A stretch of 64,000 nucleotides of DNA from positions 62,001 through 126,000 of the IMG/VR virus record IMGVR_UViG_3300042519_004024; one strand, 5' to 3'. The number at the start of each line of letters is the position of its first letter. Positions within the stretch are counted from its first letter, which is position 1. Positions 6,904 to 18,028 of the stretch are shown here, one piece after another. A program made the position numbers and the translations under genes. Below the pieces are notes generated by a model. It had not been told where the DNA came from, did not search any database, and was given only the letters and a program-made list of their open reading frames with translations.

Positions 6904-7003
6904 AACATTAATTTTAATATAATTATCCAAACAAAAAACAATCCAATCTATCAAATGAACAAGGTGGTTGTTTAAATTAACAACCACCCCATTTAGATTA
7001 TTA

Positions 7004-7738
7004 TTACACCATCTTCAACAAGATGTCAGCCGTTCCCTCCCAAGTTTTGATTTGAGATTTTGGAACCCAAAACTCCATCTCACCGATTTCGTCAACACGT
7101 TTCATGTACTCCAAACGGAAAGCTTCTGCTTGTGACTTGTCAGTGATGTAAGGAACCCCTACGTGACTTGCACAAATCTTACCAAGTCCTGTCAACATTG
7201 AAAACTCATCAGTAAGAGTTTTCATACAACAAGTACAAACAGAACCTCTTTTGATTGTAAGTTTAGCTGCGAATTTCACGGCTTTAGGTGAGATTGCAAG
7301 AACCTTAGTCACATCCAAAAGGATTGGGTTGAACTTCAATCCGTAAGTCTCTTTAAGAGATTGTCCCGCCTTACGTCCGATTTTGATTGTATCACCGATA
7401 GCCGGTACATTCAAATGAACAGTCTTTGCCTTGTCCTCTTCTTTTTGGATTTGGTTCAAAGCCGCTGAGATTTGTTTGTCAGACAACTTTCCGTACTTCT
7501 CAAGTTTACCTTTCAACTCGTTAACGAAAGAGTTCTCACCCTCGTATGCTGCGATTTTTTTCATATCGTCAGTCATCTCAACAGCTTTCGCCTCTACAGG
7601 GTTGTTGAAGATTTTTTCAACTGCGGCTCTTTGGTTAGCCGTCAATGATCCGTATTTAGTCATTGCGTCTTTCATTTTCAAGATGAAAGAATTTTTACCG
7701 TTGTAGTTTCTTACTTGTGTTGCGATGTCTGTTGTCAT
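7004..7738 (-). CDS. Early protein with duplicated ~30-aa module and C-terminal DUF6011-like Cys motif
   Basis: YNGKNSF...KYGSLTANQRAA and YEGENSF...KYGKLSDKQISAA; CTCCMKTLTDEFSMLTGLGKICA; host-type promoter upstream. Confidence 0.75.
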   Translation of the reverse strand: MTTDIATQVRNYNGKNSFILKMKDAMTKYGSLTANQRAAVEKIFNNPVEAKAVEMTDDMKKIAAYEGENSFVNELKGKLEKYGKLSDKQISAALNQIQKEEDKAKTVHLNVPAIGDTIKIGRKAGQSLKETYGLKFNPILLDVTKVLAISPKAVKFAAKLTIKRGSVCTCCMKTLTDEFSMLTGLGKICASHVGVPYITDKSQAEAFRLEYMKRVDEIGEMEFWVPKSQIKTWEGTADILLKMV

Positions 7739-7760
7739 ATCTTTTCCGTTTTGATTTATA

Positions 7761-7790
7761 CAAAGATATGAAAATTTTATTAATTACAAA
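7761..7790 (-). promoter_or_regulatory. Bacteroidota-type housekeeping promoter
   Basis: TTTG-N18-TATCTTTG on minus strand. Confidence 0.7.
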
Positions 7791-7803
7791 ATTTATTTCT
7801 GAT

Positions 7804-8310
7804 TTATTTATTTTTTAATTCAAGTAAATATTGATAAAGTTCGTCTTCTTGTCCCGGTGAGTATCCAACATATGATTTAACAATATTACCATATACATCT
7901 AAAATGAAAGTGTGTGGTATATTATTTACCCCTAAAGCTCTTTTTAAATCACCATTTACATCCAACCAAACTTCATAATCCCAAGAACTTCCTTTAACGT
8001 ATGTCTCTACAGAATTTTTAGTTTTCTCATCATCTACTGAAACAGCAATTAGTGTTACACCGGTACTATCAACCCACTGAGAGTAAACATCATTAATTGA
8101 ATTTAATTCTTTTTTACACGGAGCACACCAAGTAGCCCAAAAACTAATAACAACCGGCCCTTCATACTTTAATTTAGCAGTATTTACCCCTTCCCCATCT
8201 AAAGTTTTTATATAAACTGTTGGTAGTTTTCTTAATGTGGTATCAATTTGTGTTGATTGCCCAAAAAATAAGAATGGAATTAAAAATAGTGTTATCAAAA
8301 AAGACTTCAT
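7804..8310 (-). CDS. TlpA/ResA-family thioredoxin-like disulfide reductase
   Basis: Signal peptide; SFWATWCAPCKKEL; NNIPHTFILD. Confidence 0.9.
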   Translation of the reverse strand: MKSFLITLFLIPFLFFGQSTQIDTTLRKLPTVYIKTLDGEGVNTAKLKYEGPVVISFWATWCAPCKKELNSINDVYSQWVDSTGVTLIAVSVDDEKTKNSVETYVKGSSWDYEVWLDVNGDLKRALGVNNIPHTFILDVYGNIVKSYVGYSPGQEDELYQYLLELKNK

Positions 8311-8388
8311 AATTTTGTTTTTTTATTATAATAAATACTCTTGAGGTTACAGAGTTAATTAAATATTGAGCACCTCTATCTCATTTTG

Positions 8389-8461
8389 TTGTCAGTAAAG
8401 GATTCGAACCAATGACACGTCCCTAAAAAGGGATTGCTCTAACCAACTGAGCTAACTGACA
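8389..8461 (-). ncRNA. Aberrant tRNA-Lys-like RNA (6-nt anticodon loop)
   Basis: Perfect acceptor TGTCAGT/ACTGACA, canonical D arm, loop TTTTTA, two T-T mismatches in T stem. Confidence 0.7.
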
Positions 8462-8499
8462 TACCTAATAATAAAACTTTAGTTTTACATTGTCAAGTG

Positions 8500-8573
8500 T
8501 GGTCCTTGTTGGGATCGAACCAACCACCCACAGATTATGAGTCTGTTGCTCTAACCGAATGAGCTAAAGGACC
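8500..8573 (-). tRNA. tRNA-Ile2(CAT), lysidine type (elongator Met less likely)
   Basis: ACAGA-CTCATAA-TCTGT; C4:G69 and C5:G68 match TilS determinants. Confidence 0.85.
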
Positions 8574-8579
8574 TATTTG

Positions 8580-8662
8580 ATGTCAGGGAGGGATTCGAAC
8601 CCACAATGAGCAACCATCTTTAACAGATGGATTCAGTACCACACTTCTTTACACTCCTGACA
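8580..8662 (-). ncRNA. tRNA-like RNA with disrupted D arm
   Basis: Acceptor TGTCAGG/CCTGACA; T arm GTGGG-TTCGAAT-CCCTC; central hairpin CCATC-TGTTAAA-GATGG. Confidence 0.65.
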
Positions 8663-8664
8663 AA

Positions 8665-8769
8665 CAACGACTCTTCAGCATTCTACTCCCCGCAAATACA
8701 TAAATGTAACACGAAATTGTATCTAATTTAACCCTACGTTGGCGGTACGGGTACTGAAGTTCATCGTTG
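8665..8769 (-). ncRNA. Structured ncRNA candidate between tRNA-Leu and a tRNA-like element
   Basis: Nested helices CAACGAT/GTCGTTG, CTTCAGTA/TGCTGAAG, CCCGTA/TGCGGG. Confidence 0.65.
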
Positions 8770-8854
8770 GTACTCGAAGAGGGACTCGAACCCTCACAAC
8801 CCACTGGTCAACAGAGCTTAAACCTGTCGTGTCTACCAATTCCACCATCCGAGC
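8768..8854 (-). tRNA. tRNA-Leu(TAA)
   Basis: Class II cloverleaf, ACAGG-TTTAAGC-TCTGT, encoded CCA. Confidence 0.93.
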
Positions 8855-8944
8855 ATTTTAAAGAGTTATTTTCTCTTTCTTACCATAAAGATAAACAAAA
8901 CAAATAATACAAATAATATTGGTGTCATAATTTTTTAATTTTTG

Positions 8945-9029
8945 TAGTCAGGACAGGAATCGAACCTGTACTAAACCTGGTATACACCATATTAAATTAG
9001 GAACGTGTTACCAATTACACCACCTGACT
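8945..9029 (-). ncRNA. tRNA-like RNA lacking a canonical anticodon arm
   Basis: Acceptor AGTCAGG/CCTGACT, D arm GTGT-AATTGGTA-ACAC, T arm ACAGG-TTCGATT-CCTGT; centre has TGGT-GTAT-ACCA hairpin. Confidence 0.75.
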
Positions 9030-9041
9030 ATTTTTATTGTG

Positions 9042-9113
9042 CGGTCCATCCGGGAATCGAACCCGAAGCATATCCGTGACAGGGATATATGTTAGCCGTT
9101 ACACCAATGGACC
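9042..9113 (-). tRNA. tRNA-Asp(GTC)
   Basis: TATCC-CTGTCAC-GGATA, G73. Confidence 0.95.
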
Positions 9114-9175
9114 AAAAAACCACATTACAAAACCATAAAGGTACAACTCCTGCGGTTGCGTTGTTCATCATATTG

Positions 9176-9247
9176 TAGTCCGTACGGGAATCGAACCCGT
9201 GACTCTGCCGTGAAAGGGCAGCGACTTAACCCCTTGTCGAACGGACC
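9176..9247 (-). tRNA. tRNA-Glu(TTC)
   Basis: CTGCC-CTTTCAC-GGCAG. Confidence 0.95.
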
Positions 9248-9263
9248 ATCTTATTTGGTATTA

Positions 9264-9295
9264 CAAAGATATGTAAACTGTTTCAATCTACCAAA
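9264..9295 (-). promoter_or_regulatory. Bacteroidota-type promoter for tRNA-Glu onward
   Basis: TTTG-N20-TATCTTTG. Confidence 0.8.
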
Positions 9296-9301
9296 TTTTT
9301 T

Positions 9302-9457
9302 TTACTTTTTTTTGTGGGACCCGCTCCCCACTCTAAACTTGTACTTCGTTCTATTAAGCGTTTTTTTCAGTTTTTTTAACCAATCAGTATTCGTGTTAGT
9401 TTTAACAAATTTAAATCTTCCTGATTCGCAAGTTCCTGATAAAACTTCTCTCATCAT
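9302..9457 (-). CDS. Putative 51-aa basic protein in tRNA array
   Basis: Hand translation MMREVLSGTCESGRFKFVKTNTNTDWLKKLKKTLNRTKYKFRVGSGSHKKK; fills a gap between tRNAs. Confidence 0.45.
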   Translation of the reverse strand: MMREVLSGTCESGRFKFVKTNTNTDWLKKLKKTLNRTKYKFRVGSGSHKKK

Positions 9458-9479
9458 TCATTTGTATTAATTGTTTATT

Positions 9480-9552
9480 TGGTGGACACTGTGGGAATCG
9501 AACCCATACGATCTGATTGCAAATCAGTCGACCTGCCGTCGGCATCAGGCCC
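9480..9552 (-). tRNA. tRNA-Ala(TGC), slightly atypical
   Basis: Loop TTTGCAA centred on TGC; G3:U70 and A73; encoded CCA; irregular acceptor/T junction. Confidence 0.8.
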
Positions 9553-9557
9553 ATTTG

Positions 9558-9629
9558 TGCGGGTAGAATGAATCGAACACTCATCTCCACATTGGAAGTG
9601 TGGAGTAATAACCATTATACGATACCCGC
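9558..9629 (-). tRNA. tRNA-Gly(TCC)
   Basis: CCACA-CTTCCAA-TGTGG. Confidence 0.93.
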
Positions 9630-9633
9630 AAAT

Positions 9634-9849
9634 TGTGACTACTCCGTTGGGATTTGTTTCGTCACTTTATCGTGAATGGGGTGATCAAACCCACTAACAT
9701 CACGGGTGTAAGTTTGTATGTCAAACTATCTCCACAAAACATTAGTTTTTATCTCTAAAACTAAAAAAACGACTTGACACCTTGTAACCCCCCTTTTAAG
9801 TGCGTGTTACCATCCTTTCTCAAGTAGAATATACTGCTTACACTCCCGT
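9634..9849 (-). ncRNA. Two-domain structured ncRNA candidate
   Basis: ACGGG(A)GTGTAAG/CTTACACCCGT closes 9702-9849; inner GTAAC/GTTAC and TAGTTTT/AAAACTA; second domain closed by GTGAT/GTCAC. Confidence 0.6.
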
Positions 9850-9929
9850 ACTGACGGTGGGATTCGAACCCACGTTTTAAACTTACCGCTACAGGCATAG
9901 ATGATATAAGCATCCACTGGTACATCAGC
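9849..9929 (-). ncRNA. tRNA-like RNA with rearranged D/anticodon region
   Basis: Acceptor GCTGATG/CGTCAGT; perfect T arm GTGGG-TTCGAAT-CCCAC; no normal D arm. Confidence 0.65.
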
Positions 9930-9935
9930 ATTTAG

Positions 9936-10007
9936 TTGCGGGGGCAGGATTCGAACCTGCGACCTACGGGTTATGAGCCCGCCGAGCTACCACTGCTCTA
10001 CCCCGCG
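9936..10007 (-). tRNA. tRNA-fMet(CAT)
   Basis: C1xA72 mismatch, GGG/CCC anticodon stem, loop CTCATAA. Confidence 0.95.
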
Positions 10008-10014
10008 ATATTTG

Positions 10015-10089
10015 TGGTGAGGGAATGGAATCGAACCATCGGCACAAGAGTTTTCTGTCTCCTTGCTCTACCTACTGAGCTACCGCACC
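10015..10089 (-). ncRNA. Aberrant tRNA-Phe-like RNA (8-nt anticodon loop)
   Basis: Phe-like body; stem AGGAG/CTCTT with loop ACAGAAAA; extra base and mismatch in acceptor stem. Confidence 0.7.
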
Positions 10090-10090
10090 A

Positions 10091-10275
10091 TAATTTGTGA
10101 TTTAGTAGTTGACTCACACTCTCGTTTCACCATCTTGAGCCAACAGGTTAATGTACTTTACGAGTTTCCCGTTTCTTACAACCACAATATTTTAAAATCA
10201 CTTTCGCCCCCTGTATAGACATACGTCAGATGCTTAAGGTCAGCCTTAACTATTAAGGGAGCCACCCGTGATTTT
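10091..10275 (-). ncRNA. Two structured RNA domains in the leader of tRNA array A
   Basis: AATCAC/GTGATT closing with TTAAGG-CTGA-CCTTAA; TTGTGGTT/AATCACAA closing with GTTGGCTCA/TGAGTCAAC. Confidence 0.55.
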
Positions 10276-10360
10276 TATTTTTAATATTTCAATGAACTTC
10301 TTCTTTCTTCACGGGAGTAGGACACCAACCTCTAACTTCCTACCCCCGTTCTCTGTCTTA

Positions 10361-10392
10361 CAAAGATATGTAATCTATTTTAATTTGCCAAA
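10361..10392 (-). promoter_or_regulatory. Bacteroidota-type promoter of tRNA array A
   Basis: TTTG-N20-TATCTTTG, followed by a 12-bp hairpin at about 10311-10349. Confidence 0.8.
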
Positions 10393-10400
10393 TCTTTTTT

Positions 10401-10748
10401 TTATTTTTTTATAAAGTACTCTTCAACTACGAATTTTCTTCCTTCTTTTTTTAGTACTCCAACAAAATCATCTTCGTGATGAATACCACAATAAAAACCT
10501 GAACCATCATGCCACAAACCACGTTTATTGTTTTTGTAAACGTTTTCACCATCAAACGTGATGTAATCAGGTTGGAATTCCTTTGTAAGGTTTGCCGCTC
10601 TAATCATTTCACGATTTTCAGAAGGGGTATAACTCCCACCAAAATCACTTTTGCAAAGAAACGTCGCCTTTCCAACCACAACTTTCTCTCCGTTGAGTGT
10701 TGCGTTTTTATCAAATTTTTTCTTGTAAGTGTAGATATAAACTCCCAT
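10401..10748 (-). CDS. Hypothetical early protein
   Basis: ATG 10748 preferred because promoter TTTG-N19-TATCTTTG (10765-10795) lies inside the longer ORF. Confidence 0.75.
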   Translation of the reverse strand: MGVYIYTYKKKFDKNATLNGEKVVVGKATFLCKSDFGGSYTPSENREMIRAANLTKEFQPDYITFDGENVYKNNKRGLWHDGSGFYCGIHHEDDFVGVLKKEGRKFVVEEYFIKK

Positions 10749-10833
10749 ATGTTTTTTATTTCTACAAAGATATGTAATCACTTTTGATTTGCAAAATCTT
10801 TTTTAAACTTTTTTTACCAATATGTCAAAGAAC

Positions 10834-10863
10834 AAAAAAACCCACCTCTTTTGGAGATGGGTT
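10834..10863 (-). terminator. Intrinsic terminator / possible attenuator 3:4 hairpin
   Basis: ACCCATCTC-CAAAA-GAGGTGGGT plus T-run. Confidence 0.8.
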
Positions 10864-10888
10864 TCAAAATTTATTATGTATTAAATTA

Positions 10889-10963
10889 TCATACCATCTC
10901 CTTATAGGAACGATCCTCAGCTATCACCAATCCGCCTAATAATATGATATGTAAATTTTTCAT
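10889..10963 (-). CDS. Putative 24-aa leader peptide
   Basis: Hand translation MKNLHIILLGGLVIAEDRSYKEMV; late motif at 10986-10992; 3' end complementary to terminator 5' arm. Confidence 0.55.
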   Translation of the reverse strand: MKNLHIILLGGLVIAEDRSYKEMV

Positions 10964-11022
10964 TTGCGTTTTTATTTGTTTTGTTATAAATATATGATAC
11001 TTTTTAAAAGTGTCAAGTTTTT

Positions 11023-11346
11023 TTAATATTTTCTTCTTGAGTATTTAAAATTTCCGTGTCTCTTTTTGTATGCGTCATAAAATGTTCTACCATACTTTTC
11101 GTCACCAAATAATCTTTTTTTAATGTCTTCAGGTATGTCTTCAAAATTTTCTACTTCACTATATGGATCATAATCAAATTCGTAATAACCAGTATCTTCT
11201 AAGTCCTTATCAAAATATGTGTGCTCACCTTCATCATCAACCCAATGATCAGTATCGCCAAACTTTGCTCTATACTTAGATTCTTTAATGACTTTATTAA
11301 CAATTCTAACTAAATCTGATTCTGTTAGTCTTATAATTTTTTTCAT
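11023..11346 (-). CDS. LTESDL-leader family protein
   Basis: MKKIIRLTESDLVRIVNKVIKES. Confidence 0.85.
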   Translation of the reverse strand: MKKIIRLTESDLVRIVNKVIKESKYRAKFGDTDHWVDDEGEHTYFDKDLEDTGYYEFDYDPYSEVENFEDIPEDIKKRLFGDEKYGRTFYDAYKKRHGNFKYSRRKY

Positions 11347-11355
11347 AATAATCTA

Positions 11356-11868
11356 TTAATATCCATGTTTTTTTGGGTACATTATATGTTCTAAATGAGA
11401 AGTATATTCAAAAGTTAAAACATCAAGTACGTCATTAATTCCATTTTTCATTTTTGAATCCTCTTCAAGTGAGTTATATTCATTTTCATAATAACTTATT
11501 AATTCTTCAAAAAGTTTTCCAATCATATTAATATTTGTTTTCCACAACGTCTTCCATTCTTCTTTTTCGTATTGTGAAAGTTCGTCATATTCAATTTCAT
11601 CATTAAATCTTTTTGATGGTCTTCTAGTGAATTTAGACATGTTTCTTTTTCTCCATAAATCATAATCGTGTTGAATGTCTCCATAACGTAAATAATTTCC
11701 TGGGATATTTTTTTCTATAAGGTAATTATTAAACAAATCTATTAACTCCGTTTTAAATTTTTCAATTTCTTCAGGTGTGATTACTTTATAAATTTCAGAT
11801 ATATTATTTTCTTTAATTACTCGTCTAACAATTCTCGCTAGATCGGATTCTGTAAGTCTATTTCTCAT
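11356..11868 (-). CDS. LTESDL-leader family protein
   Basis: MRNRLTESDLARIVRRVIKEN. Confidence 0.85.
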   Translation of the reverse strand: MRNRLTESDLARIVRRVIKENNISEIYKVITPEEIEKFKTELIDLFNNYLIEKNIPGNYLRYGDIQHDYDLWRKRNMSKFTRRPSKRFNDEIEYDELSQYEKEEWKTLWKTNINMIGKLFEELISYYENEYNSLEEDSKMKNGINDVLDVLTFEYTSHLEHIMYPKKHGY

Positions 11869-11882
11869 TTTTATATTTTTTA

Positions 11883-12497
11883 TTATGCATATTCTTCATC
11901 GTCAAAGTCCTCATACTCATCAAATGGGTCCTCACGCCTTTTTGTTATTATCGTCCCTTCACCATCTATTTTACCACCAGTCCCGAATACGTCTTTTGGT
12001 AATTTTCTATACTTTTCAGGTTTATAATCTTCAGGATATCTTTTTTTTTGTATAAAGTCATCCCAACCTTCACCTAATTCTTCATCTCTTCCTTTTGTTT
12101 TTGCAAATGCTTTTTTCAAATCATTAACTGAGTGTCCTCCAATCGCATCGTATGGTTCGTCCTCATCAACTTTATAGAAACCTTCTTTTTCCATTAAGTA
12201 TTCAATATCGTTAGGCAAATCACCATAACCTTCATCACGTAAAGCCATAACAATATCAAATTCACTCATCAAATTAAGGTCGTGTATATCATATTCACAT
12301 TCATTTTCAAGTATATCTCTTGCCTGTTCAATTAAATCTTGAAGTCTTTCCTCACCTCTATCGGTTTGTCCCCACTCTTCATCATCACTATAGTATGGAT
12401 CATACATACTTCTATCTTTATAGTCGTCGTTTTCTTTAATTACCCGTCTAACAATTCTTGCTAAATCTGATTCTGTTAGTCTTATTATTCTTTTCAT
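11883..12497 (-). CDS. LTESDL-leader family protein, acidic
   Basis: MKRIIRLTESDLARIVRRVIKEN. Confidence 0.85.
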   Translation of the reverse strand: MKRIIRLTESDLARIVRRVIKENDDYKDRSMYDPYYSDDEEWGQTDRGEERLQDLIEQARDILENECEYDIHDLNLMSEFDIVMALRDEGYGDLPNDIEYLMEKEGFYKVDEDEPYDAIGGHSVNDLKKAFAKTKGRDEELGEGWDDFIQKKRYPEDYKPEKYRKLPKDVFGTGGKIDGEGTIITKRREDPFDEYEDFDDEEYA

Positions 12498-12499
12498 TA

Positions 12500-13033
12500 T
12501 TATCTGTTGTTTCTACTTTTATCGGACTTTCCGTAATGGTGTCCTGATTGGTATTTATCATAACCTTTTCTTTTAAACCAAGCGGCGTCTCTAAGAGTAT
12601 TACTCGCTAAAGCATAAACGCCTAAAGCAGCAGCAATTCCCCCACTTATAAACATCGCTGCCGGAACAATTGCTAATGCCGCACCAACTGAACTATAGCC
12701 AATAATTTTATCAATAATACTTCTTATTTCATATTCATTATCACCCATTTCATTTTCATCCTCTTCCGTCAATACAGACTCCAAAGAATCTTTAACTATT
12801 GATTGTAAAGATTCAATACCGTTACTTTCTATAAAATCACGTAACATATCTTGCTCTTCAGGACTCAATTGTTCTGTAGCCTCTTTACTACTTTGTTCCA
12901 ATTCCATTTTTGAAAAATCGACATCCGATTCCATATCTTCAGATTGTGAAATCCATTCTTCTTCGTTTTCTTTAATCACTCGTCTAACAATTCTTGCTAG
13001 ATCAGATTCTGTAAGTCTTATAATTTTTTTCAT
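12500..13033 (-). CDS. LTESDL-leader family protein with hydrophobic hairpin
   Basis: MKKIIRLTESDLARIVRRVIKEN; hydrophobic SSVGAALAIVPAAMFISGGIAAALGVYALA. Confidence 0.85.
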   Translation of the reverse strand: MKKIIRLTESDLARIVRRVIKENEEEWISQSEDMESDVDFSKMELEQSSKEATEQLSPEEQDMLRDFIESNGIESLQSIVKDSLESVLTEEDENEMGDNEYEIRSIIDKIIGYSSVGAALAIVPAAMFISGGIAAALGVYALASNTLRDAAWFKRKGYDKYQSGHHYGKSDKSRNNR

Positions 13034-13063
13034 TATTTTTTTATTTATAAATACTTTGTTATT

Positions 13064-14020
13064 TTAAAAACCAAAGTTTAATCTTAAATCGTCTAATTTA
13101 ATTACCTCGGTAACTTCAACAAAATTATCTTCCATACCAACACTATCTCTTCTATCCTCCATTGTCATCTCATCATCTTCAATATATCTTACATGAATTT
13201 CAAGATTAAATGGAACAATTTCTTCATTTGATTCAATTTCATTAAAATCTTCCACTGAAAAATATTTACCTTCGTATTGACTGAACCCATCTCCAATCAT
13301 TATGTTGAAACTTTTTCTTATATTATACCTGTAATCGTCAGTTTCAACTTCTCCATTTCCATCACAATTACTACAAGTACTTGATCCATACCCATCACAC
13401 CATCCACATTCTTCATCTCCAGCACCTTCACATGATGGACATTCAAAATTACCTGTCCCACCACAATCACTACATCTATCTTCACCGGTTCCATCACAAT
13501 GAACACACTCTACCTCCACTTCAACCTCATCACCTTCATCATCTTCTTCAGTATCGGTTTCACTTCCTCTACCATCACAATAACGACATTCTTCATTACC
13601 TGATCCATCACAAGTATCACAATCTATAGTTGTTTCTCCATCACAACTACGACATTCTCGTCTACCTGACCCATCACAGTGTTCACATTGTTCATCACCT
13701 GAACCGTAACAGTAATCACATTCATTTTTAATTACTTCAGTGTCTTCATACAATTCAATAACTGCAACGTATAGGTTCATTATTATTCCTTCCATTGCAA
13801 CAGGATCCATTTTTCTATTTAAAATAAAATATGTCATAACACATACTTTAATTCTTTCTTGTGTGGAATTGACTTTTGATAATAATAATTCGGCTAAATG
13901 ATCACTTTTTATGATATTTATTATTTTTGAAATACCGATAAATACGTTTCCGTATTCGGTTTTCATTAAATTAGCTAAATTATTAGCTATTGAGTATAAT
14001 TTTTTAAATTCAGGTGACAT
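13064..14020 (-). CDS. Protein with ten CxxCxGxG zinc-finger repeats
   Basis: Ten motifs at 11-aa spacing, 5+5 around an acidic loop; no J domain. Confidence 0.85.
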   Translation of the reverse strand: MSPEFKKLYSIANNLANLMKTEYGNVFIGISKIINIIKSDHLAELLLSKVNSTQERIKVCVMTYFILNRKMDPVAMEGIIMNLYVAVIELYEDTEVIKNECDYCYGSGDEQCEHCDGSGRRECRSCDGETTIDCDTCDGSGNEECRYCDGRGSETDTEEDDEGDEVEVEVECVHCDGTGEDRCSDCGGTGNFECPSCEGAGDEECGWCDGYGSSTCSNCDGNGEVETDDYRYNIRKSFNIMIGDGFSQYEGKYFSVEDFNEIESNEEIVPFNLEIHVRYIEDDEMTMEDRRDSVGMEDNFVEVTEVIKLDDLRLNFGF

Positions 14021-14054
14021 ATAGTATAAATATTAAAATACTATAAAATGTACA

Positions 14055-14372
14055 CTATATTAATTTAATAAGGTCCGTTGGGTAAACTTTTTTTAGTTGG
14101 ATGTCGTATGTTTTTATAAACCAATCTAAAAGTAGGCTATCGGTTTCATAATCAAAAAATGACTTTAATTCATTATATAATTTTAAAGGACAATTTAAAT
14201 CGTCTCCGTAACCAATATGATTAAAATAAAAAAACACAAATTGTTTTTTGTTTTTTGTGTCAACTAAATAAAAGGCAATGAAATCTCCATCACATTTGTG
14301 AAGTAGTTTGAGTTTATTTAACTCAGGTAAAAACATATTAATATAATCTGAAAAAGACTTCTCTAAACTCAT
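14055..14372 (-). CDS. Hypothetical protein
   Basis: ATG 14372 overlaps upstream TGA (ATGA). Confidence 0.65.
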   Translation of the reverse strand: MSLEKSFSDYINMFLPELNKLKLLHKCDGDFIAFYLVDTKNKKQFVFFYFNHIGYGDDLNCPLKLYNELKSFFDYETDSLLLDWFIKTYDIQLKKVYPTDLIKLI

Positions 14373-14674
14373 AACTCTTGTACTTGAATCATAATCCAAT
14401 CAACTTCACCTTCAGTTAGGTTACCAAGTACGTCTTCAGTTATATGAGTATTGTATGTAATTTCCCATTCATTTTCATTTCCATGCAGCACGGCAACTTC
14501 CCATTCATTTTCATCTGAAGTATATGACGCATACCTAAACCCTTTTTCAGATATAGGACTTGGTATTTTAAACCTTACAACAGATAATCCATATCCATTA
14601 GGAAAAAATATTAATCCGTGTTGCCCATCAAATGTTGGGTGTGGTTTAAATACAATATCCTTAAATGATTTCAT
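14369..14674 (-). CDS. Hypothetical phage protein
   Basis: ORF track; TAATG coupling to upstream small ORF. Confidence 0.75.
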   Translation of the reverse strand: MKSFKDIVFKPHPTFDGQHGLIFFPNGYGLSVVRFKIPSPISEKGFRYASYTSDENEWEVAVLHGNENEWEITYNTHITEDVLGNLTEGEVDWIMIQVQEL

Positions 14675-14826
14675 TACGCGAAAGTTTTTTTATGTTTTGT
14701 TTTTCTAGTATAAAGGTTTTTTGGTTTTTCAACACGAGCAACAAATCTACCATCAAAAAATCCCGCATCTAATTGATCTTTTCTGATTTGAGTTCTTTTT
14801 ACTTTATGTTGATCGTACGTCTTCAT
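14674..14826 (-). CDS. ArfA-like ribosome-rescue factor candidate, 50 aa
   Basis: Hand translation MKTYDQHKVKRTQIRKDQLDAGFFDGRFVARVEKPKNLYTRKTKHKKTFA; promoter 14842-14872; TAATG coupling. Not in ORF track. Confidence 0.55.
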   Translation of the reverse strand: MKTYDQHKVKRTQIRKDQLDAGFFDGRFVARVEKPKNLYTRKTKHKKTFA

Positions 14827-14841
14827 CTCATTTATTTTTTA

Positions 14842-14872
14842 CAAAGATATAAATATTTTATTATATACCAAA
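14842..14872 (-). promoter_or_regulatory. Bacteroidota-type promoter
   Basis: TTTG-N19-TATCTTTG. Confidence 0.8.
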
Positions 14873-14879
14873 TTTTTTG

Positions 14880-14953
14880 TACCTCCGGCAGGACTCGAAC
14901 CTGCAAAATTCACTTTCTAAGAGTGACGTGTATACCTATTCCACCACGAAGGC
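14880..14953 (-). tRNA. tRNA-Leu(TAG) with short variable loop
   Basis: TCACT-CTTAGAA-AGTGA, A73; variable region only ATTTT. Confidence 0.88.
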
Positions 14954-14964
14954 ATTTATTTATG

Positions 14965-15036
14965 AGCTCAGGGAGGGATTCGAACCCACATACTACGGTT
15001 TTGCAGACCGAGACTTTACCAATCAGACACCTGAGC
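14965..15036 (-). tRNA. tRNA-Cys(GCA)
   Basis: TCGGT-CTGCAAA-ACCGT, U73. Confidence 0.9.
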
Positions 15037-15038
15037 AA

Positions 15039-15494
15039 TTAACGGCAGTGATGGTCTGCCGCTCTTGTTGCAATTTGATTGTCAGGTTTAATATTTGCTT
15101 TATAACCTAACGACGTTGCCCACCCAACAACGGGTTGTACAAGTTTTGAACTAAAGTGTTTTTCTTCACAGTTATAATCCAAATCTATTTCAACCTTAAC
15201 TTTTACTTTTTGAGTTAACCATTCGGCAACCTCGATTGAATAATCAGCTTCATTCCAAAGACGTGTCCATTTGTCTTTTATTTTTTTCACTTTTTGTTTG
15301 TGTAGGATGTAGTGAACACCTCTGTTTCCGTATCTGTATGCTATCACTGTAACATATACGGTACTTCTTCTATGGTTTTGTGAATCCGTTCCAATATGTA
15401 TTTCAGCCCATGGACATTCCTTTAAAACATCTAAGGTGTGTTTTACCACATCAGGGATTGCTTCACCATTAATTGTTCTAAATACTCTGTTCAT
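15039..15494 (-). CDS. RNase H-like YkuK-family protein
   Basis: IHIGTDSQ, RLWNEAD, EIDLDYN, ATRAAD acidic motifs. Confidence 0.85.
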   Translation of the reverse strand: MNRVFRTINGEAIPDVVKHTLDVLKECPWAEIHIGTDSQNHRRSTVYVTVIAYRYGNRGVHYILHKQKVKKIKDKWTRLWNEADYSIEVAEWLTQKVKVKVEIDLDYNCEEKHFSSKLVQPVVGWATSLGYKANIKPDNQIATRAADHHCR

Positions 15495-15505
15495 TATTTC
15501 TACTT

Positions 15506-15643
15506 TTATTTACTTATCAAAAAATAAGTAATAAGAATTTGAGCAATCACGGCAATTATTCTTGCTATTGTTCTTGCTAATGTCATTCGATTTTTCCAAC
15601 CTTCCAACCTTTCTTCAAATGTTGGTTTAACATTTTCATCCAT
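15506..15643 (-). CDS. Small membrane protein, 45 aa
   Basis: MDENVKPTFEERLEGWKNRMTLARTIARIIAVIAQILITYFLISK; start moved to ATG 15643 to avoid tRNA-Phe. Confidence 0.6.
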   Translation of the reverse strand: MDENVKPTFEERLEGWKNRMTLARTIARIIAVIAQILITYFLISK

Positions 15644-15656
15644 ACTATTTTTTTTG

Positions 15657-15732
15657 TGGAACCATAGGGAGTCGAACCCTAACCTCTGGATTTTCAGTCC
15701 AGCGTGACACACCACACTTACACCATAGTTCC
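15657..15732 (-). tRNA. tRNA-Phe(GAA)
   Basis: CTGGA-CTGAAAA-TCCAG. Confidence 0.92.
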
Positions 15733-16227
15733 TTATTTAACTTCAAATGCAAATTTAATCACACGTTTCTTTTTTACCGCATCATCCCAATTACCAATAA
15801 CAACACCATCTTTAATTGTGAATGCGTGTCTTGAAACAAGGATGAAGAATGTCCCAACAGGATTTTGTTTTGCAAAAGTACCAACAGTCATTTCTCGTTT
15901 AGTTACAACACCCTTAGTTTTAACTTCGTACTTTAAACTGTACATCCCCATAGTACTTTTAGTACCCATACATTTAACTTTCTTGTAGTTAATCTGTCTT
16001 CTATCTTCGGCGATTTGTTTCATTTTTAAAACAGTACCATAAGTCCCCTCACGATCTTTACGTCCAAAGTTCTCTTTAACATATTTGTGAGCGTAGTCAT
16101 ATGAAACCCCAAATGAAGATGCAAATGCTCTAACAACACAATCATTCTTCTCTCCTCTTGCGATAGGTGATTCAGCATACCCCTTAATCGCTTCTTTCGT
16201 CGTACAATATGGTAATCCTTCTTTCAT
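15733..16227 (-). CDS. Conserved phage protein, possible Cys-His peptidase-like fold
   Basis: EKNDCVVRAFA and SRHAFTIKDG; ATG 16227. Confidence 0.65.
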   Translation of the reverse strand: MKEGLPYCTTKEAIKGYAESPIARGEKNDCVVRAFASSFGVSYDYAHKYVKENFGRKDREGTYGTVLKMKQIAEDRRQINYKKVKCMGTKSTMGMYSLKYEVKTKGVVTKREMTVGTFAKQNPVGTFFILVSRHAFTIKDGVVIGNWDDAVKKKRVIKFAFEVK

Positions 16228-16274
16228 ACTGTAAAGATACAAAAACTTTTTTAATTGGCAAAATTAAAAATTAG

Positions 16275-16345
16275 CGCGCCCCCAAGGTTTCGAACCCTGA
16301 CCGATGGGTTTGGAATCCATCATGCTACCATTACACCAGAGACGC
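16275..16345 (-). tRNA. tRNA-Trp(CCA)
   Basis: Loop TTCCAAA, G73. Confidence 0.9.
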
Positions 16346-16382
16346 AAGTTGTCCGACCTAGCTCGGAACCGACATCGGATTG

Positions 16383-16455
16383 TACCCCCTCAGAGATTCG
16401 AACTCCGACCTGACACCTTAGAAGAGTGTTGTACTTCCAATTATACGAAAGGGGC
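16383..16455 (-). tRNA. tRNA-Arg(TCT)
   Basis: ACACT-CTTCTAA-GGTGT. Confidence 0.92.
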
Positions 16456-16460
16456 AAATA

Positions 16461-16631
16461 AAAGATGATGAATGACTTTATCAGGAATCCCGCTACTTCT
16501 ATCAAAGCTTCACACACCATTAGAGAGTTGGGTTGTTACATCAATACAATTAAGATTGAATACCTATCCTTAGTTTGTACCCTTGCGACACGTCTCTCCA
16601 CGCTTATCATTCTACGCTTCTTATCATCTTT
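16461..16631 (-). ncRNA. 171-nt rod-like ncRNA candidate (6S-like shape)
   Basis: AAAGATGAT/ATCATCTTT, GAATGAT/GTCATTC, AAGC/GCTT, TGGAGAG/CTCTCTA; bounded by two tRNA-Arg genes. Confidence 0.65.
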
Positions 16632-16633
16632 TG

Positions 16634-16706
16634 TACCTTCGGCGAGATTCAAACTCACATCTTGCGGGTCGTAACCGCAGGTTCTATTCTATTTAACTAC
16701 GAAGGT
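16634..16706 (-). tRNA. tRNA-Arg(ACG), variant D and T loops
   Basis: TGCGG-TTACGAC-CCGCA; D loop lacks GG; T loop TTTGAAT. Confidence 0.85.
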
Positions 16707-16710
16707 ATAA

Positions 16711-16802
16711 ATAGTTCTGGTCAACCACTCGCCACCCACCTCAGGGAATAAAGGGAATACCACCCTATACTTTGAGCCTAAGCCTTGTCCGTTGTGAACT
16801 AT
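16711..16802 (-). ncRNA. 92-nt structured ncRNA candidate
   Basis: ATAGTTC/GAACTAT closing stem, CAAC/GTTG, CTCA/TGAG, AGGG/CCCT; between His and Arg tRNAs. Confidence 0.5.
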
Positions 16803-16805
16803 TTG

Positions 16806-16879
16806 TGTGTATGATGGGGGTCGAACCCATGACCTCTTGAACCACAATCAAGCACTCTACCAACTGAGCTACATACACC
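16806..16879 (-). tRNA. tRNA-His(GTG)
   Basis: CTTGA-TTGTGGT-TCAAG; encoded G-1 opposite A73. Confidence 0.92.
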
Positions 16880-16884
16880 ATATT

Positions 16885-16954
16885 GTCCCGTGTAATGGTA
16901 TCGAACCACTCTAAAGTCGGATATGAGCCAACTTTGATCCCTGATCACACGGGA
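16885..16954 (-). tRNA. Non-canonical CAT tRNA with 8-bp acceptor and 8-bp anticodon stems (elongator Met candidate)
   Basis: TCCCGTGT/ACACGGGA; mini D arm ATC-AGG-GAT; AAAGTTGG-CTCATAT-CCGACTTT; T arm AGTGG-TTCGATA-CCATT. Confidence 0.7.
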
Positions 16955-16958
16955 GTTG

Positions 16959-17047
16959 AGGAAAACAGTGGTAACGATCCACAATCGGTTTCTCACCGAT
17001 CACATTGTTTAGCAAACAAGTCCCGTCGCCTTCAGGGATTACTTTCC
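16959..17047 (-). tRNA. tRNA-Ser(GCT)
   Basis: Loop TTGCTAA; variable arm ATCGGT/ACCGAT; T loop ATCGTTA; U73. Confidence 0.85.
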
Positions 17048-17106
17048 ATAGAGTGTGGTAGGACTGCAGTTCCTTGGGGATCCCACACTATTTATTCCCC
17101 TTTTTG

Positions 17107-17179
17107 TGTTCACGACGGGTTACGATCCCATTACCTCCGACGTATCAGATCGGCGCTCTACCAATTGAGCTACGTGAAC
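17107..17179 (-). tRNA. tRNA-Ile(GAT)
   Basis: CCGAT-CTGATAC-GTCGG; T loop ATCGTAA. Confidence 0.92.
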
Positions 17180-17185
17180 TTATCG

Positions 17186-17258
17186 CGGACAAGGAAGGGT
17201 ACGATCCTACAACCTATCGGTTAACAGCCGATTGCTCTACCAATTGAGCTACTTGTCC
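17186..17258 (-). tRNA. tRNA-Asn(GTT)
   Basis: ATCGG-CTGTTAA-CCGAT, G73; T loop ATCGTAC. Confidence 0.92.
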
Positions 17259-17262
17259 ATTG

Positions 17263-17348
17263 TGGTGGGAGAGGAGGGACTCGAACCCCCAAGGTCTTTC
17301 GACGACAGATTTACAGTCTGCTGAGCCAACCAATTGCTCAACTCTCCC
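17263..17348 (-). tRNA. tRNA-Tyr(GTA)
   Basis: GCAGA-CTGTAAA-TCTGT, variable arm, encoded CCA. Confidence 0.95.
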
Positions 17349-17354
17349 AGTTTA

Positions 17355-17477
17355 GGAAAGGGGAAGATGGTTCTGTGGACATCCCCTTTTATGATTGGCG
17401 TTACTATGACAGTTAAAACTCCGACATAACCACGACTACTGACACGTTAACGTTATATCATTCCCCAATCAACCTTT
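17355..17477 (-). ncRNA. Structured ncRNA candidate between tRNA-Val and tRNA-Tyr
   Basis: TGATTGG/CCAATCA domain then AAAGGGGATG/CATCTTCCCCTTT hairpin. Confidence 0.5.
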
Positions 17478-17478
17478 G

Positions 17479-17552
17479 TACACCCTACAGGGATCGAACC
17501 TGTGACCTGTTGTATGTAAAACAACCGCTACTACCAGCTGAGCTAAAGGTGC
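17479..17552 (-). tRNA. tRNA-Val(TAC)
   Basis: GTTGT-TTTACAT-ACAAC. Confidence 0.92.
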
Positions 17553-17554
17553 GT

Positions 17555-17770
17555 TTATGATGTTATCATTTTAATACTTTCAATTGTGGTAGAGTACATT
17601 CCTTGTTCAATGTAAGGTTTACTATCTTTTAATAGTTTCAAAACAATTTCTGTTGCCTCGTTTTCGGTTTTACCTTGTTTAACCAATCTTACGATTGCTT
17701 TTTCACATTCTTCACCAACCTTAACCATTCCACTTGGAAGTCCTTTTTTAATCTTCTCTACTTTTTTCAT
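17555..17770 (-). CDS. Hypothetical early protein
   Basis: 71 aa directly after promoter TTTG-N19-TATCTTTG (17775-17805). Confidence 0.7.
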   Translation of the reverse strand: MKKVEKIKKGLPSGMVKVGEECEKAIVRLVKQGKTENEATEIVLKLLKDSKPYIEQGMYSTTIESIKMITS

Positions 17771-17813
17771 AGTACAAAGATAATACTTTTTTTTAATCTA
17801 CCAAATTTTTTTG

Positions 17814-18022: not shown

Positions 18023-18028
18023 TTATTG

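Follow-up and report, generated by a model that had tools for sequence, protein, structure and literature searches.

Introduction

Ribosome-mediated (leader-peptide) transcription attenuators control amino-acid operons such as trp, his, leu, thr and pheA in Proteobacteria, and have also been predicted in Bacteroidota, where leader-peptide attenuation has been proposed in Flavobacterium (PMC9723704). In these systems a short ORF lies upstream of an intrinsic terminator, the leader can form the mutually exclusive pairings 1:2, 2:3 (antiterminator) and 3:4 (terminator), and the position of the ribosome on the leader decides the outcome. Other translation-sensing attenuators, such as pyrBI and the leaders of erm, cat and tna, dispense with specific amino-acid codon runs, their outcome depending on how closely or how far the lead ribosome follows RNA polymerase, or on peptide-dependent stalling. 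In T-box riboswitches a similar choice between antiterminator and terminator is linked to tRNA status. On the other hand, the rrn antitermination system uses boxA together with NusB/S10/NusG/NusA/SuhB, and is also exploited by lambdoid phages at nut sites. How phages control the expression of their large tRNA arrays is, in contrast, essentially unknown.

We have analyzed a stretch of 64,000 nucleotides (positions 62,001 to 126,000 of IMG/VR record IMGVR_UViG_3300042519_004024; hereafter "the window") from a 213,924-bp phage genome record. A sequence-only reading of it had described, upstream of a tRNA array (array A), a late motif, a 24-aa ORF and a terminator, with an 8-nt complementarity between the last codons and the terminator 5' arm, and an upstream ATCGTTCCT able to pair with AGGAGAT; from these it had inferred that late read-through into the downstream gene and the tRNA array depends on translation status. 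What had been observed is confirmed on the minus strand, whereas the interpretation is supported only in part. Broadly, the element belongs to a family of giant freshwater phages, apparently of Bacteroidota, which carry just upstream of their tRNA genes a conserved reading frame of 22-25 codons whose last codons can pair with the front arm of the next terminator. This is the layout of a translation-sensing attenuator, a function inferred here from sequence alone, and it is followed directly by a copy of the host ribosomal-RNA boxA signal.

Anatomy of the element

The features of the locus are collected in Table 1. GGAGATGG, in the last codons of the leader ORF, is the exact reverse complement of CCATCTCC in the terminator. 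The 5' UTR is A-rich and has no Shine-Dalgarno sequence. Of the pairing proposed between ATCGTTCCT and AGGAGAT, only UCCU:AGGA (4 bp) forms in the predicted fold, as a local hairpin that is absent in other sequence classes and thus not conserved.

Table 1. Features of the attenuator-like locus and its surroundings (window coordinates).
Feature	Position	Strand	Sequence	Remarks
Upstream promoter element	10999-11016	-	TTGACA (11016-11011) overlapping the inverted repeat ACACTTTT-A-AAAAGT (11013-10999)	May be a -35-like box, an operator, or both (function inferred); conserved in all homologues
Promoter core	10985-10994	-	TATATTTATA; contains the "late motif" TATTTATA (10992-10985)	Promoter-like; resembles the Bacteroidota σA -7 box TAnnTTTG (PMC9723704) but ends in A
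Leader ORF	10889-10963	-	MKNLHIILLGGLVIAEDRSYKEMV	ATG at 10963, TGA at 10891-10889; 24 codons plus TGA; four UUR Leu codons (4, 8, 9 and 12)
Segment 1	10938-10949	-	UAUCAUAUUAUU	Codons 5-9; predicted to pair with segment 2 and the stop codon (10898-10887) in the ribosome-free leader
Proposed 1:2 partner	10914-10906	-	ATCGTTCCT	From the sequence-only reading
Its counterpart	10902-10896	-	AGGAGAT	From the sequence-only reading
Segment 2	10894-10901	-	GGAGAUGG	Ends 2 nt before the stop codon; antiterminator 5' strand
Segment 3	10853-10860	-	CCAUCUCC	Most of the terminator 5' arm plus the first loop base
Intrinsic terminator	10834-10865	-	Stem GAAACCCAUCUC / GAGGUGGGUUUU, loop CAAAA; as DNA GAAACCCATCTC-CAAAA-GAGGTGGGTTTT (10865-10837)	12 pairs; about -16 kcal/mol; 7-U run (10840-10834)
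boxA-like motif	10817-10833	-	GTTCTTTGACATATTGG	Starts directly after the T-run
boxA-like motif, second copy	18216-18205
Host-type (Bacteroidota σA) promoter	10765-10795	-	TTTG-N19-TATCTTTG	For the next gene; consensus from PMC9723704
Repeat of the host-type promoter	10410-10378
Downstream 115-aa gene	10401-10748	-		Unknown function; variable cargo gene, absent in some relatives
tRNA array A	8388-10089	-		Co-oriented with the element; includes tRNA-Leu(UAA) at 8768-8854
σ70-family protein	46525-47340

The motif TATTTATA is a real recurrent one, since it lies upstream of 34 of 243 ORFs (an 11.6-fold enrichment), often 4 nt before the ATG. A scan for the promoter pattern recovered 34 loci already found with the 19-mer of the ORF start, plus 2 new ones. 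TTGACA-N16-TATATT could be read as an ordinary σ70 promoter, but this is unlikely to be the whole story, as the host signals are of Bacteroidota type (TTG-N19-TAnnTTTG, no Shine-Dalgarno) and the TATTTATA core recurs without a -35 box at 34 other genes. The "late" timing suggested for the motif is an inference: a Pfam search for capsid and terminase genes gave no hits in the 71%-complete record.

Sequence searches gave little further identity to the locus. Comparison with public phage genomes (blastn) returned no relatives, only a 57-nt match to an uncultured phage. A search of Rfam at E ≤ 1 over 7000-21000 found no family covering 10834-10992 and no T-box, riboswitch or known leader; a weak hit, Thr_leader (29.5 bits against a gathering score of 55), falls on a paralogous element (type B) upstream of tRNA array B and is probably just its terminator. 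The 24-aa and 36-aa peptides and both flanking proteins matched no Pfam or PHROG family. The downstream 115-aa gene is without a family match.

Conservation of the leader reading frame

At least 101 distinct homologues were found in viral and metagenome contigs, and the ORF is intact at 22, 24 or 25 codons in 100 of the 101, always ending ..V-stop. Its indels are only of 3 nt, while the spacer after the stop has indels of 1-5 nt. A dN/dS of 0.39 was obtained (p = 2e-7), and of 0.36 for the middle codons alone; nonetheless, second codon positions change as often as third positions (27/50/55), so the coding signal is moderate. Three variants of class III differ within the ORF only by GGA/GGT/GGC, all glycine. 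Every variant has 3-4 UUR Leu codons, all within codons 4-14, without any tandem run and with an enrichment of only P = 0.037-0.11.

The frame conservation and the dN/dS below 1, together with the lack of a conserved structure in the ORF body, do not fit a structured small RNA, a riboswitch or a T-box: the leader body is variable and only about 70 nt long, RNAalifold recovered only the terminator as consensus, and no Rfam hit was found. They also bear on the possibility that a phage or host RNA-binding protein, or an RNA, binds the purine-rich segment 2 (AAGGAGAKGG) or the leader and decides between antiterminator and terminator, as in TRAP, PyrR and LicT-type systems, the ORF being incidental or having a separate role. 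In its favor, the 2:3 helix is conserved, segment 2 is always purine-rich and Shine-Dalgarno-like in a host phylum that does not use Shine-Dalgarno sequences, and the phage has its own σ factor and many genes of unknown function. However, the intact frame, the 3-nt indels and the fixed stop position argue against it, there is no repeated protein-binding motif, and the variable middle of the leader is unlikely to be an aptamer or a defined protein site. We regard this alternative as improbable.

Alternative pairings in the leader

Whether the 8-nt complementarity is conserved had been set beforehand as a test of the attenuation reading, and it is. Across 34 aligned homologues, 94.1% of the cells of the 8-bp antiterminator helix are paired, against 47-70% when the 3' partner is slid by 1-3 columns; the covariation score (0.232) was reached by 0 of 500 shuffles (0.145±0.012). 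Three of the eight pairs show double (compensatory) changes, including positions that lie in the terminator loop, for example GAAGAGGG with CCCTCTTC and GAGGAGGG with CCCTCCCC, and G·U intermediates are present in the population. Native combinations of ORF end and terminator arm pair better than permuted ones, as 0 of 5000 permutations, and 0 of 3000 in a larger set, reached the native mean. These figures must be taken together with the shallowness of the family (81% mean column identity): the covariation rests on about three independent compensatory events plus the class I/II split, shuffle tests ignore phylogeny, and discordant recombinants exist, GGAGAGGG with CCCATCTCC occurring 4 times (homologue L089 among them), with homologues L128 and L132 as further cases. 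Segment 2 ends 2 nt before the stop codon in every homologue inspected, and the distance from stop to terminator is 19-25 nt in 93 of 97 elements. The terminator is itself conserved with covariation (A-U changes to C-G in 13 sequences), although one natural variant (L124) lacks it altogether.

Within the genome, 16 hairpin+T6 terminators were compared, and this one has the best complement within about 100 nt upstream (-15.1 kcal/mol with an 8-nt exact match); the next best is -10.9, and no other has more than 5 nt exact. The complementarity is thus more than would be expected by chance. An ordinary insulating terminator, simply stopping transcription from the upstream gene and the TATTTATA promoter before the stable-RNA unit, would make it a by-product of purine-rich and pyrimidine-rich sequence inherited together in a young family. 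Even permuted pairs of segments 2 and 3 pair at about -13 kcal/mol, because all variants are GGAG-like against CTCC-like, and linkage over 33 nt could keep the two together. This reading is nevertheless the least likely of those considered, given the double changes and the rank among the 16 terminators; furthermore, a boxA placed 4 nt after a fully efficient terminator, with no promoter before tRNA-Leu, would be pointless in 30 loci (see below).

In nascent RNA cut before the terminator 3' arm, the MFE structure contains the 2:3 helix in 27 of 34 sequences, a state about 4.5 kcal/mol more stable than any fold without segment 3, while in the full-length RNA the terminator fold wins by about 6 kcal/mol, the energetics expected of a kinetic switch. 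The leader is also predicted to fold on itself (mean z-score -2.17), and this fold would complete the 1:2 / 2:3 / 3:4 logic. Instead of the partner suggested by the sequence-only reading, segment 2 is predicted to pair with the start of the ORF, codons about 5-9 (or about 3-9), with pair probabilities of 0.9-1.0 in classes I and III but only weakly in class II. A single compensatory change, a C-G in place of U-A in L132, was observed in this helix, and RNAalifold did not recover it, because it uses different registers in different classes.

The type B element has the same layout and a weaker equivalent pairing, clear in one sequence class (-13.9 kcal/mol) but weak in the window's own copy (-6 to -7 kcal/mol); it was not used as primary evidence.

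The boxA-like motif and the downstream genes

Four nt after the T-tract lies GTTCTTTGACATATTGG. The exact 17-mer occurs in more than 120 genomes, almost all Bacteroidota, being identical to a sequence in the 16S-23S spacer of many of them, at the position of the spacer boxA; in Pedobacter, Flavihumibacter and Niabella it lies between the spacer tRNA and the 23S rRNA, on the rRNA strand. GGUUCUUUGACA matches the E. coli boxA UGCUCUUUAACA at 9 of 12 positions (PMC13753749) and resembles AUGAUCUUUGAAA of B. subtilis. A reading of the motif as a phage promoter was rejected, since it is often downstream of a σA-type promoter and is identical to a sequence in the rrn spacer of bacteria; no T7-like RNA polymerase gene was found, in a search whose control genomes did not respond either.

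In 59 of 94 homologues the next gene is tRNA-Leu(UAA), and the motif precedes it in 59 of 59 loci, 8-12 nt before the first tRNA in the loci inspected; tRNA-Leu(UAA) is the first gene in all 59 loci that have an adjacent tRNA. In 30 of them only the boxA-like motif, and no recognizable σA-type promoter, lies between terminator and tRNA, so that read-through is biologically needed in these relatives. On the other hand, a host-type promoter follows the boxA in this window and 28 relatives, and in 29 others a promoter lies between terminator and boxA; downstream genes therefore do not depend only on read-through. Contigs from RNA libraries bridge the terminator in two independent runs, but they are assembled, unstranded and of low depth (1-10), carry no information on 3' ends, ratios or conditions, do not exclude DNA carry-over and show no drop in depth across the terminator. 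A joint from 10185 to 10760 in contigs from RNA runs shows relatives that lack the 115-aa gene.

These data also bear on a stand-alone small gene with its own promoter and terminator, making a micro-protein of 22-25 aa or a small RNA of roughly 150 nt that acts in trans and does not regulate what lies downstream, the tRNA array and cargo genes using their own promoters; the complementarity would then serve something else, such as mRNA folding or stability, or merely set a constitutive level of terminator leakage. Promoter, short transcript and strong terminator are typical of such genes, the peptide is under some purifying selection, which a mere spacer peptide would not need, host-type promoters follow the element in many loci, and the element is present in many freshwater metatranscriptomes. 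Bacteriophage T4, for its part, carries small stable RNAs of unknown role in its tRNA cluster. However, this does not explain the covariation of segment 2 with terminator-loop positions, its fixed distance to the stop codon, or the 30 loci where boxA and tRNA-Leu(UAA) can only be reached by read-through; no conserved structure marks the ORF body, and the peptides match no Pfam or PHROG family. We consider it unlikely, though the strongest of the alternatives.

A model for the element

The explanation that we favor, although only about as likely as not on present evidence, is a ribosome-dependent attenuator at the head of a stable-RNA and cargo-gene unit in a giant phage of Bacteroidota. In this view, transcription would start a few nt downstream of the TATATTTATA core, around 10982, run through the ORF and reach the terminator, whose hairpin would be prevented from forming when segment 2 pairs with segment 3. 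If a ribosome has translated the leader promptly and sits on the last codons or the stop codon, segment 2 would be buried, the terminator would form and transcription would stop. If translation is slow or stalled in the first half of the ORF (codons 4-14, holding all 3-4 UUA/UUG codons), the ribosome would also melt the 1:2 helix, leaving segment 2 free to form the antiterminator, and RNA polymerase would read through. The read-through transcript would then carry the boxA, presumably recruiting NusB/S10 and making the polymerase processive through the untranslated tRNA array, which in most relatives begins with tRNA-Leu(UAA). The anatomy, its conservation, the covariation of the alternative helix, the moderate coding signature and the boxA identity come from the analysis itself, whereas the transcription start site, translation of the ORF, the response of termination to it, the direction of the switch, Nus recruitment and its effect on the polymerase, "late" timing and any specific sensing of tRNA-Leu are inferred.

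A bolder and more doubtful possibility is that of a phage-encoded sensor of decoding capacity, in which slow translation of UUA/UUG, or of the leader in general, opens the terminator, and late transcription flows through a stolen rrn boxA into the phage's own tRNA-Leu(UAA) and the rest of the array. This would be a self-regulating tRNA supply, a kind of attenuation that has not been described for tRNA genes or for phages.

A conserved cis-element coupling tRNA gene transcription to the state of translation would give a concrete, testable mechanism for demand-driven tRNA supply during infection. It would also extend leader-peptide attenuation to phages, to stable-RNA genes and to Bacteroidota, a phylum with unusual promoters and Shine-Dalgarno-independent initiation. 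The adjacent boxA suggests that these phages also borrow the host's rRNA antitermination machinery for their tRNA arrays, and points to Bacteroidota as the host of an uncultured clade of roughly 300-kb freshwater phages, with freshwater Chitinophagaceae, Sphingobacteriales and Flavobacteriia as candidate hosts.

Comparison with described systems

T-box riboswitches share with the proposed element the logic of antiterminator against terminator, linked to tRNA status, but no specifier loop or T-box sequence was found here, and the host phylum is not known for T-boxes. With pyrBI and the leaders of erm, cat and tna the inferred dependence on the lead ribosome would be shared, and a conserved leader peptide would fit a stalling peptide, although no ligand or stalling motif is known here and the regulated genes would be tRNAs.

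As in the rrn system, the boxA-like motif lies upstream of untranslated stable-RNA genes; it differs in being placed ahead of phage tRNA arrays rather than rRNA or phage early operons, in the lack of evidence for a boxB or N-like partner, and in sitting downstream of the putatively gated terminator, which it therefore cannot suppress.

The attenuators of amino-acid operons are the closest in layout, with a short ORF upstream of an intrinsic terminator, mutually exclusive pairings (the 1:2 helix being predicted and weak in class II) and the energetics of a kinetic switch. The present element differs from them in being found in a phage, ahead of tRNA/stable-RNA and cargo genes instead of a biosynthetic operon; in having scattered UUR codons rather than a tandem run of regulatory codons; in the moderate conservation of the peptide itself; in matching no Rfam leader family; in a segment 2 that lies inside the ORF rather than after it; and in being followed at once by an rrn-type boxA.

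Organization of the Element and Genomic Context

The region upstream of the tRNA genes has all of its features on the minus strand, and their coordinates are collected in the table below. Read 5' to 3', the stop codon of a 107-aa ORF is followed by a TTGACA box overlapping an inverted repeat, the TATATTTATA promoter-like core, an A-rich stretch with no Shine-Dalgarno sequence, a 24-codon ORF, an AU-rich stretch of 23 nt between the stop codon and the terminator stem, and a strong intrinsic terminator. A sequence-only reading had described a late motif, a 24-aa ORF and a terminator, the last codons of the ORF being exactly complementary to the terminator 5' arm; this observation holds, with coordinates that are right in every detail. 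The inverted repeat (ACACTTTT-N-AAAAGT(G)T) lies between the TTGACA and the TATTTATA core and is conserved in all homologues, and it may be an operator for a dimeric regulator.

Features of the element and its surroundings (window positions unless a sequence handle is given)
Feature	Position	Strand	Sequence or remark
Stop codon of the 107-aa ORF	11025-11023	-	
TTGACA	11016-11011	-	TTGACA
Inverted repeat	11013-10999	-	ACACTTTT-A-AAAAGT
Promoter-like core	10994-10985	-	TATATTTATA
Leader ORF	ATG 10963 to TGA 10891-10889	-	24 codons, MKNLHIILLGGLVIAEDRSYKEMV
Long-range helix, start of the ORF	10949-10938	-	codons about 3-9
Long-range helix, end of the ORF	10898-10887	-	3' half of segment 2 plus stop codon
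Segment 2	10901-10894	-	GGAGATGG
Segment 3	10860-10853	-	CCATCTCC, exact reverse complement of segment 2
Intrinsic terminator	10865-10837, T's to 10834	-	GAAACCCATCTC-CAAAA-GAGGTGGGTTTT, seven T's
boxA-like 17-mer	10833-10817	-	GTTCTTTGACATATTGG
boxA-like 17-mer, second phage copy	18221-18205	-	GTTCTTTGACATATTGG
boxA-like 17-mer in bacterial genomes	L156:2545-2561; L159:2346-2362; L180:3101-3117	rRNA strand	GTTCTTTGACATATTGG
Duplicated host-type promoter	10814-10782 and 10410-10378	-	on both sides of the 115-aa gene
Apparently structured RNA	about 10390-10100, especially 10266-10201	-	also at L004:3640-3850
tRNA found by Rfam	10089-10015	-	39.6 bits
Weak tmRNA 3'-end match	9874-9857	-	16.2 bits, model positions 346-363
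tRNAs called by ARAGORN	8388-8461 and 8944-9029	-	two-base 'tt' anticodons
Element B	18520-18325	-	36-codon ORF, MKTTNRHMNICNPSIQWSFNVYRTLKSRVRAFSFMS
σ70-family protein	46525-47340		
TATTTATA 4 nt before an ATG (examples)	60019, 46335, 30543, 14032	-	long ORFs
Shared N-terminus	11346-11275 (-), 13033, 27072 and others		MK(K/R)IIRLTE..
Variant L124 of the element	L124:465-560		

The window is part of a 213,924-bp IMG/VR virus record of about 30% GC and 71% completeness, with no close relative among public phage genomes. Several lines point to a Bacteroidota host: genes lack Shine-Dalgarno sequences, many intergenic regions carry TTG-N19-TAnnTTTG, the σA promoter type of Bacteroidota (PMC9723704), and one phage protein has SprB repeats. 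The so-called late motif is real as a motif, since TATTTATA is 11.6-fold enriched upstream of ORFs (34 of 243), although no recognisable capsid or terminase genes were found against which its "late" timing could be judged. It often lies exactly 4 nt before the ATG of long ORFs; if the start site sits 5 nt after the box, as for the σA -7 box, these mRNAs would be leaderless, and the σ70-family protein encoded by the phage might read this motif. In addition, many unrelated small phage proteins share an N-terminus that is about 80% identical over the first 22-26 residues and occurs several times per genome in this phage clade (195 matches in viral contigs).

Homologues and Conservation of the Leader ORF

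Syntenic loci carrying the same element were found by a protein search with the upstream ORF, whereas a 19-mer from the ORF start recovered 51 viral loci and at least 120 metagenome loci. A scan with the promoter alone found 34 loci already recovered plus two new ones, both with the ORF intact. In all, 101 distinct elements were gathered from freshwater and lake samples, several of them on contigs of 257-311 kb. The ORF is intact in 100 of these 101 elements, at 22, 24 or 25 codons, always starting MKNLHI and ending V-stop; the exception, L391, has lost the stop codon (TAA to GAA). Another natural variant, L124, has lost the terminator and the following promoter, so that its ORF runs straight into the boxA-like motif.

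Between classes, the ORF differs by 3-nt indels only, while the spacer after the stop has indels of 1-5 nt. Along minimum-spanning trees of 56 distinct ORF sequences, 52 of 132 changes are synonymous against 20% expected, giving a dN/dS of 0.39 (p = 2e-7), and 0.36 for the middle codons alone. The signal is moderate, because second codon positions change as often as third positions (27/50/55), and we conclude that the ORF is probably translated and that its peptide is under some constraint. Every variant has 3-4 UUA/UUG codons, all within codons 4-14, upstream of segment 2. UUR codons make up 5.6% of codons in the genes of the phage, giving P(≥4 of 23) = 0.037 and P(≥3 of 21) = 0.11; the adjacency to tRNA-Leu(UAA) makes this suggestive, but it is not significant on its own.

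The Alternative Helices and Their Energetics

For each of the 16 hairpin+T6 terminators found in this genome, the best duplex between the 5' arm and the roughly 100 nt upstream was computed. The element ranks first, at -15.1 kcal/mol with an 8-nt exact complement, the next being -10.9 and no other having more than 5 nt exact. Lack of conservation of this complementarity had been named beforehand as grounds for rejecting attenuation, and it was examined on an alignment of 34 distinct sequences, in which columns 87-94 with 132-139 correspond to segments 2 and 3. The helix forms standard pairs in 94.1% of cells, shows double (compensatory) changes at three of eight pairs, and has a covariation score reached by none of 500 shuffles, whereas pairing falls to 47-70% when the 3' partner is slid by 1-3 columns. 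The main classes are GGAGATGG with CCCATCTCC..GAGGTGGG, GGAGAGGG with CCCCTCTC(T/C)..AGAGGGG, and GGTGATGG with CCCATTTCC..GAGATGGG.

Two further compensations involve bases that lie in the terminator loop and are constrained only by the alternative helix, namely GAAGAGGG with CCCTCTTC, whose G·U intermediate (GGAGAGGG with CCCTCTTC) is also present in the population, and GAGGAGGG with CCCTCCCC. Permuting the ORF ends and terminator arms among haplotypes never reached the native mean duplex energy (-15.0 against -13.1±0.4, 0 of 5000; -14.85 against -13.27±0.27, 0 of 3000). Nonetheless, the family is shallow, the shuffle tests ignore relatedness, and discordant recombinants exist, such as the homologues L089, L128 and L132, with GGAGAGGG with CCCATCTCC occurring four times. 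A plain insulating terminator with inherited complementarity, which we consider improbable, does not explain the covariation at loop positions or the fixed distance between segment 2 and the stop codon; neither does an autonomous small-protein or small-RNA gene with its own terminator, a somewhat less remote but still unlikely alternative.

When the nascent RNA was folded as cut just before the 3' arm of the terminator, the minimum-energy fold contained the helix between segments 2 and 3 (2:3) in 27 of 34 sequences, a state on average 4.5 kcal/mol more stable than the best fold in which segment 3 is kept unpaired. With the full transcript, the terminator fold is about 6 kcal/mol more stable than the forced 2:3 fold, and in a few variants the two are equal. 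This is what a co-transcriptional switch needs.

On the other hand, the upstream (1:2) pairing proposed from sequence alone, ATCGTTCCT:AGGAGAT, reduces to a 4-bp UCCU:AGGA hairpin in this subclass and is not conserved. What is found in every sequence is a predicted long-range helix between the start of the ORF and its end, with pair probabilities of 0.9-1.0 in classes I and III, and weaker in class II. The leader from ATG to stop+8 folds better than dinucleotide shuffles (mean z-score of -2.17, with 21 of 34 sequences below -2), and L132 carries a C-G where the others have U-A or U·G. RNAalifold does not recover this helix, because the classes use different registers.

The boxA-Like Motif and the Downstream Genes

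Four nt after the T-run comes the 17-mer GTTCTTTGACATATTGG, which precedes the phage tRNAs and whose exact sequence occurs in more than 120 bacterial genomes, almost all Bacteroidota (Pedobacter, Mucilaginibacter, Chitinophaga, Sediminibacterium, Bacteroidales and others), with many hits on contigs of 5-6 kb, the size of an rRNA operon. In three genomes checked with Rfam (L156, L159 and L180), it lies between the spacer tRNA and the 23S rRNA, on the rRNA strand, which is the position of the spacer boxA in E. coli. Its first 12 bases match the E. coli boxA consensus UGCUCUUUAACA at 9 positions and also resemble the B. subtilis boxA-like AUGAUCUUUGAAA (PMC13753749; PMC2724277). We read it as a boxA borrowed from the rRNA operons of the host phylum, to which it also points.

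Of the 94 elements with enough downstream sequence, 59 have tRNA-Leu(UAA) as the next gene within 140 nt, always preceded by this motif. In 30 of those 59, no σA-type promoter lies between the terminator and the tRNA, whereas in the other 29 a promoter lies between the terminator and the boxA. Among the 94, 28 elements, including this window, have the boxA right after the terminator, and in 25 of them, this window among them, a host-type promoter and a variable protein gene follow. A boxA placed after a terminator with no promoter in between can only be transcribed by read-through; read-through must therefore occur and must matter. The promoter-less boxA and tRNA-Leu after the terminator are likewise not explained by the autonomous gene or by the insulating terminator. 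In this window the host-type promoter is duplicated around the 115-aa gene, and some relatives lack that gene, as seen in a joint from 10185 to 10760 in contigs from RNA runs; this suggests that cargo genes are swapped in and out by recombination between promoter repeats.

Further downstream of a host-type promoter lies a conserved, unannotated, apparently structured RNA, which is also present in sequence L004 and matches no Rfam family. A 66-nt piece of it is by far the most abundant stretch in four metatranscriptomes (depth up to 387), with unlike flanks in every run. Rfam also finds a tRNA that ARAGORN misses, while ARAGORN calls two further tRNAs with undetermined, two-base anticodons, so that their anticodon loops look unusual. 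Just after tRNA-Met there is a weak Rfam match to the 3' end of tmRNA, where ARAGORN calls no tmRNA.

Transcript Evidence and a Paralogous Element

Many lake and freshwater metatranscriptome runs contain 27-53% of the sampled 31-mers of the element. Four runs were compared with window positions 9300-11900, using unstranded, assembled contigs only. A 203-nt contig in run X15 covers 10967-10763 and a 151-nt contig in run X25 covers 10925-10795, both crossing the terminator and the boxA, and one contig in run X26 covers 11021-10886. Depth is low (1-10), similar to nearby coding regions, and does not drop across the terminator; this is consistent with read-through, but it does not exclude DNA carry-over and says nothing about regulation.

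A second, paralogous element (element B) lies upstream of tRNA array B. It comprises a host-type promoter, then ACTTTTA-N12-TATATTTATAAC, with the same spacing as in the first element but with only the ACTTTTA half of the inverted repeat, a 36-codon ORF (MKTTNRHMNICNPSIQWSF..), a terminator (ACCCGAAC/GTTCGGGT plus T7), and tRNA-Thr directly after it with no promoter. The peptide is conserved in two classes in other phages. Its ORF codons about 27-30 can pair with the terminator 5' arm, strongly in one sequence class (-13.9 kcal/mol, with a tandem G·A) and weakly in the class of the window itself, with one U-A to C-G double change between the two classes. This supports a common design, but only weakly.

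Proposed Mechanism and Comparison With Known Systems

The mechanism to which we commit is that of a ribosome-dependent attenuator. In this view, prompt translation to the end of the leader would bury segment 2 in the ribosome and the terminator would form; the stop codon is 2 nt after segment 2, and the terminator stem starts 19-25 nt after the stop in 93 of 97 elements, which would be clear of a terminating ribosome. Slow or stalled translation in the first half of the ORF would instead melt the 1:2 helix and leave segment 2 free, so that the antiterminator would form and RNA polymerase would read through into the boxA, presumably becoming there a Nus-modified, processive complex for the untranslated tRNA array. 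The anatomy, its conservation, the covariation, the energetics, the boxA identity and the gene order are shown by the present analysis, whereas the transcription start, translation of the ORF, the direction of the switch, Nus recruitment and the idea that UUA/UUG decoding is what is sensed are inferences. The proposal that late read-through into the downstream gene and tRNA array depends on translation status is partly supported, by comparative evidence, while the dependence on translation itself is inferred. A terminator switched by a protein or RNA factor rather than by the ribosome is a rival that we regard as doubtful.

Our literature searches found nothing on attenuation of phage tRNA arrays. 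The anatomy and comparative support are good and the biological logic is attractive, although the function is inferred from sequence alone. As proposed, the element would work like the leader-peptide attenuators of amino-acid operons, but it matches no Rfam leader family and has no run of regulatory codons; it further differs from them in that segment 2 lies inside the ORF, in its location in a phage ahead of tRNA genes, and in its coupling to an rrn-type boxA.
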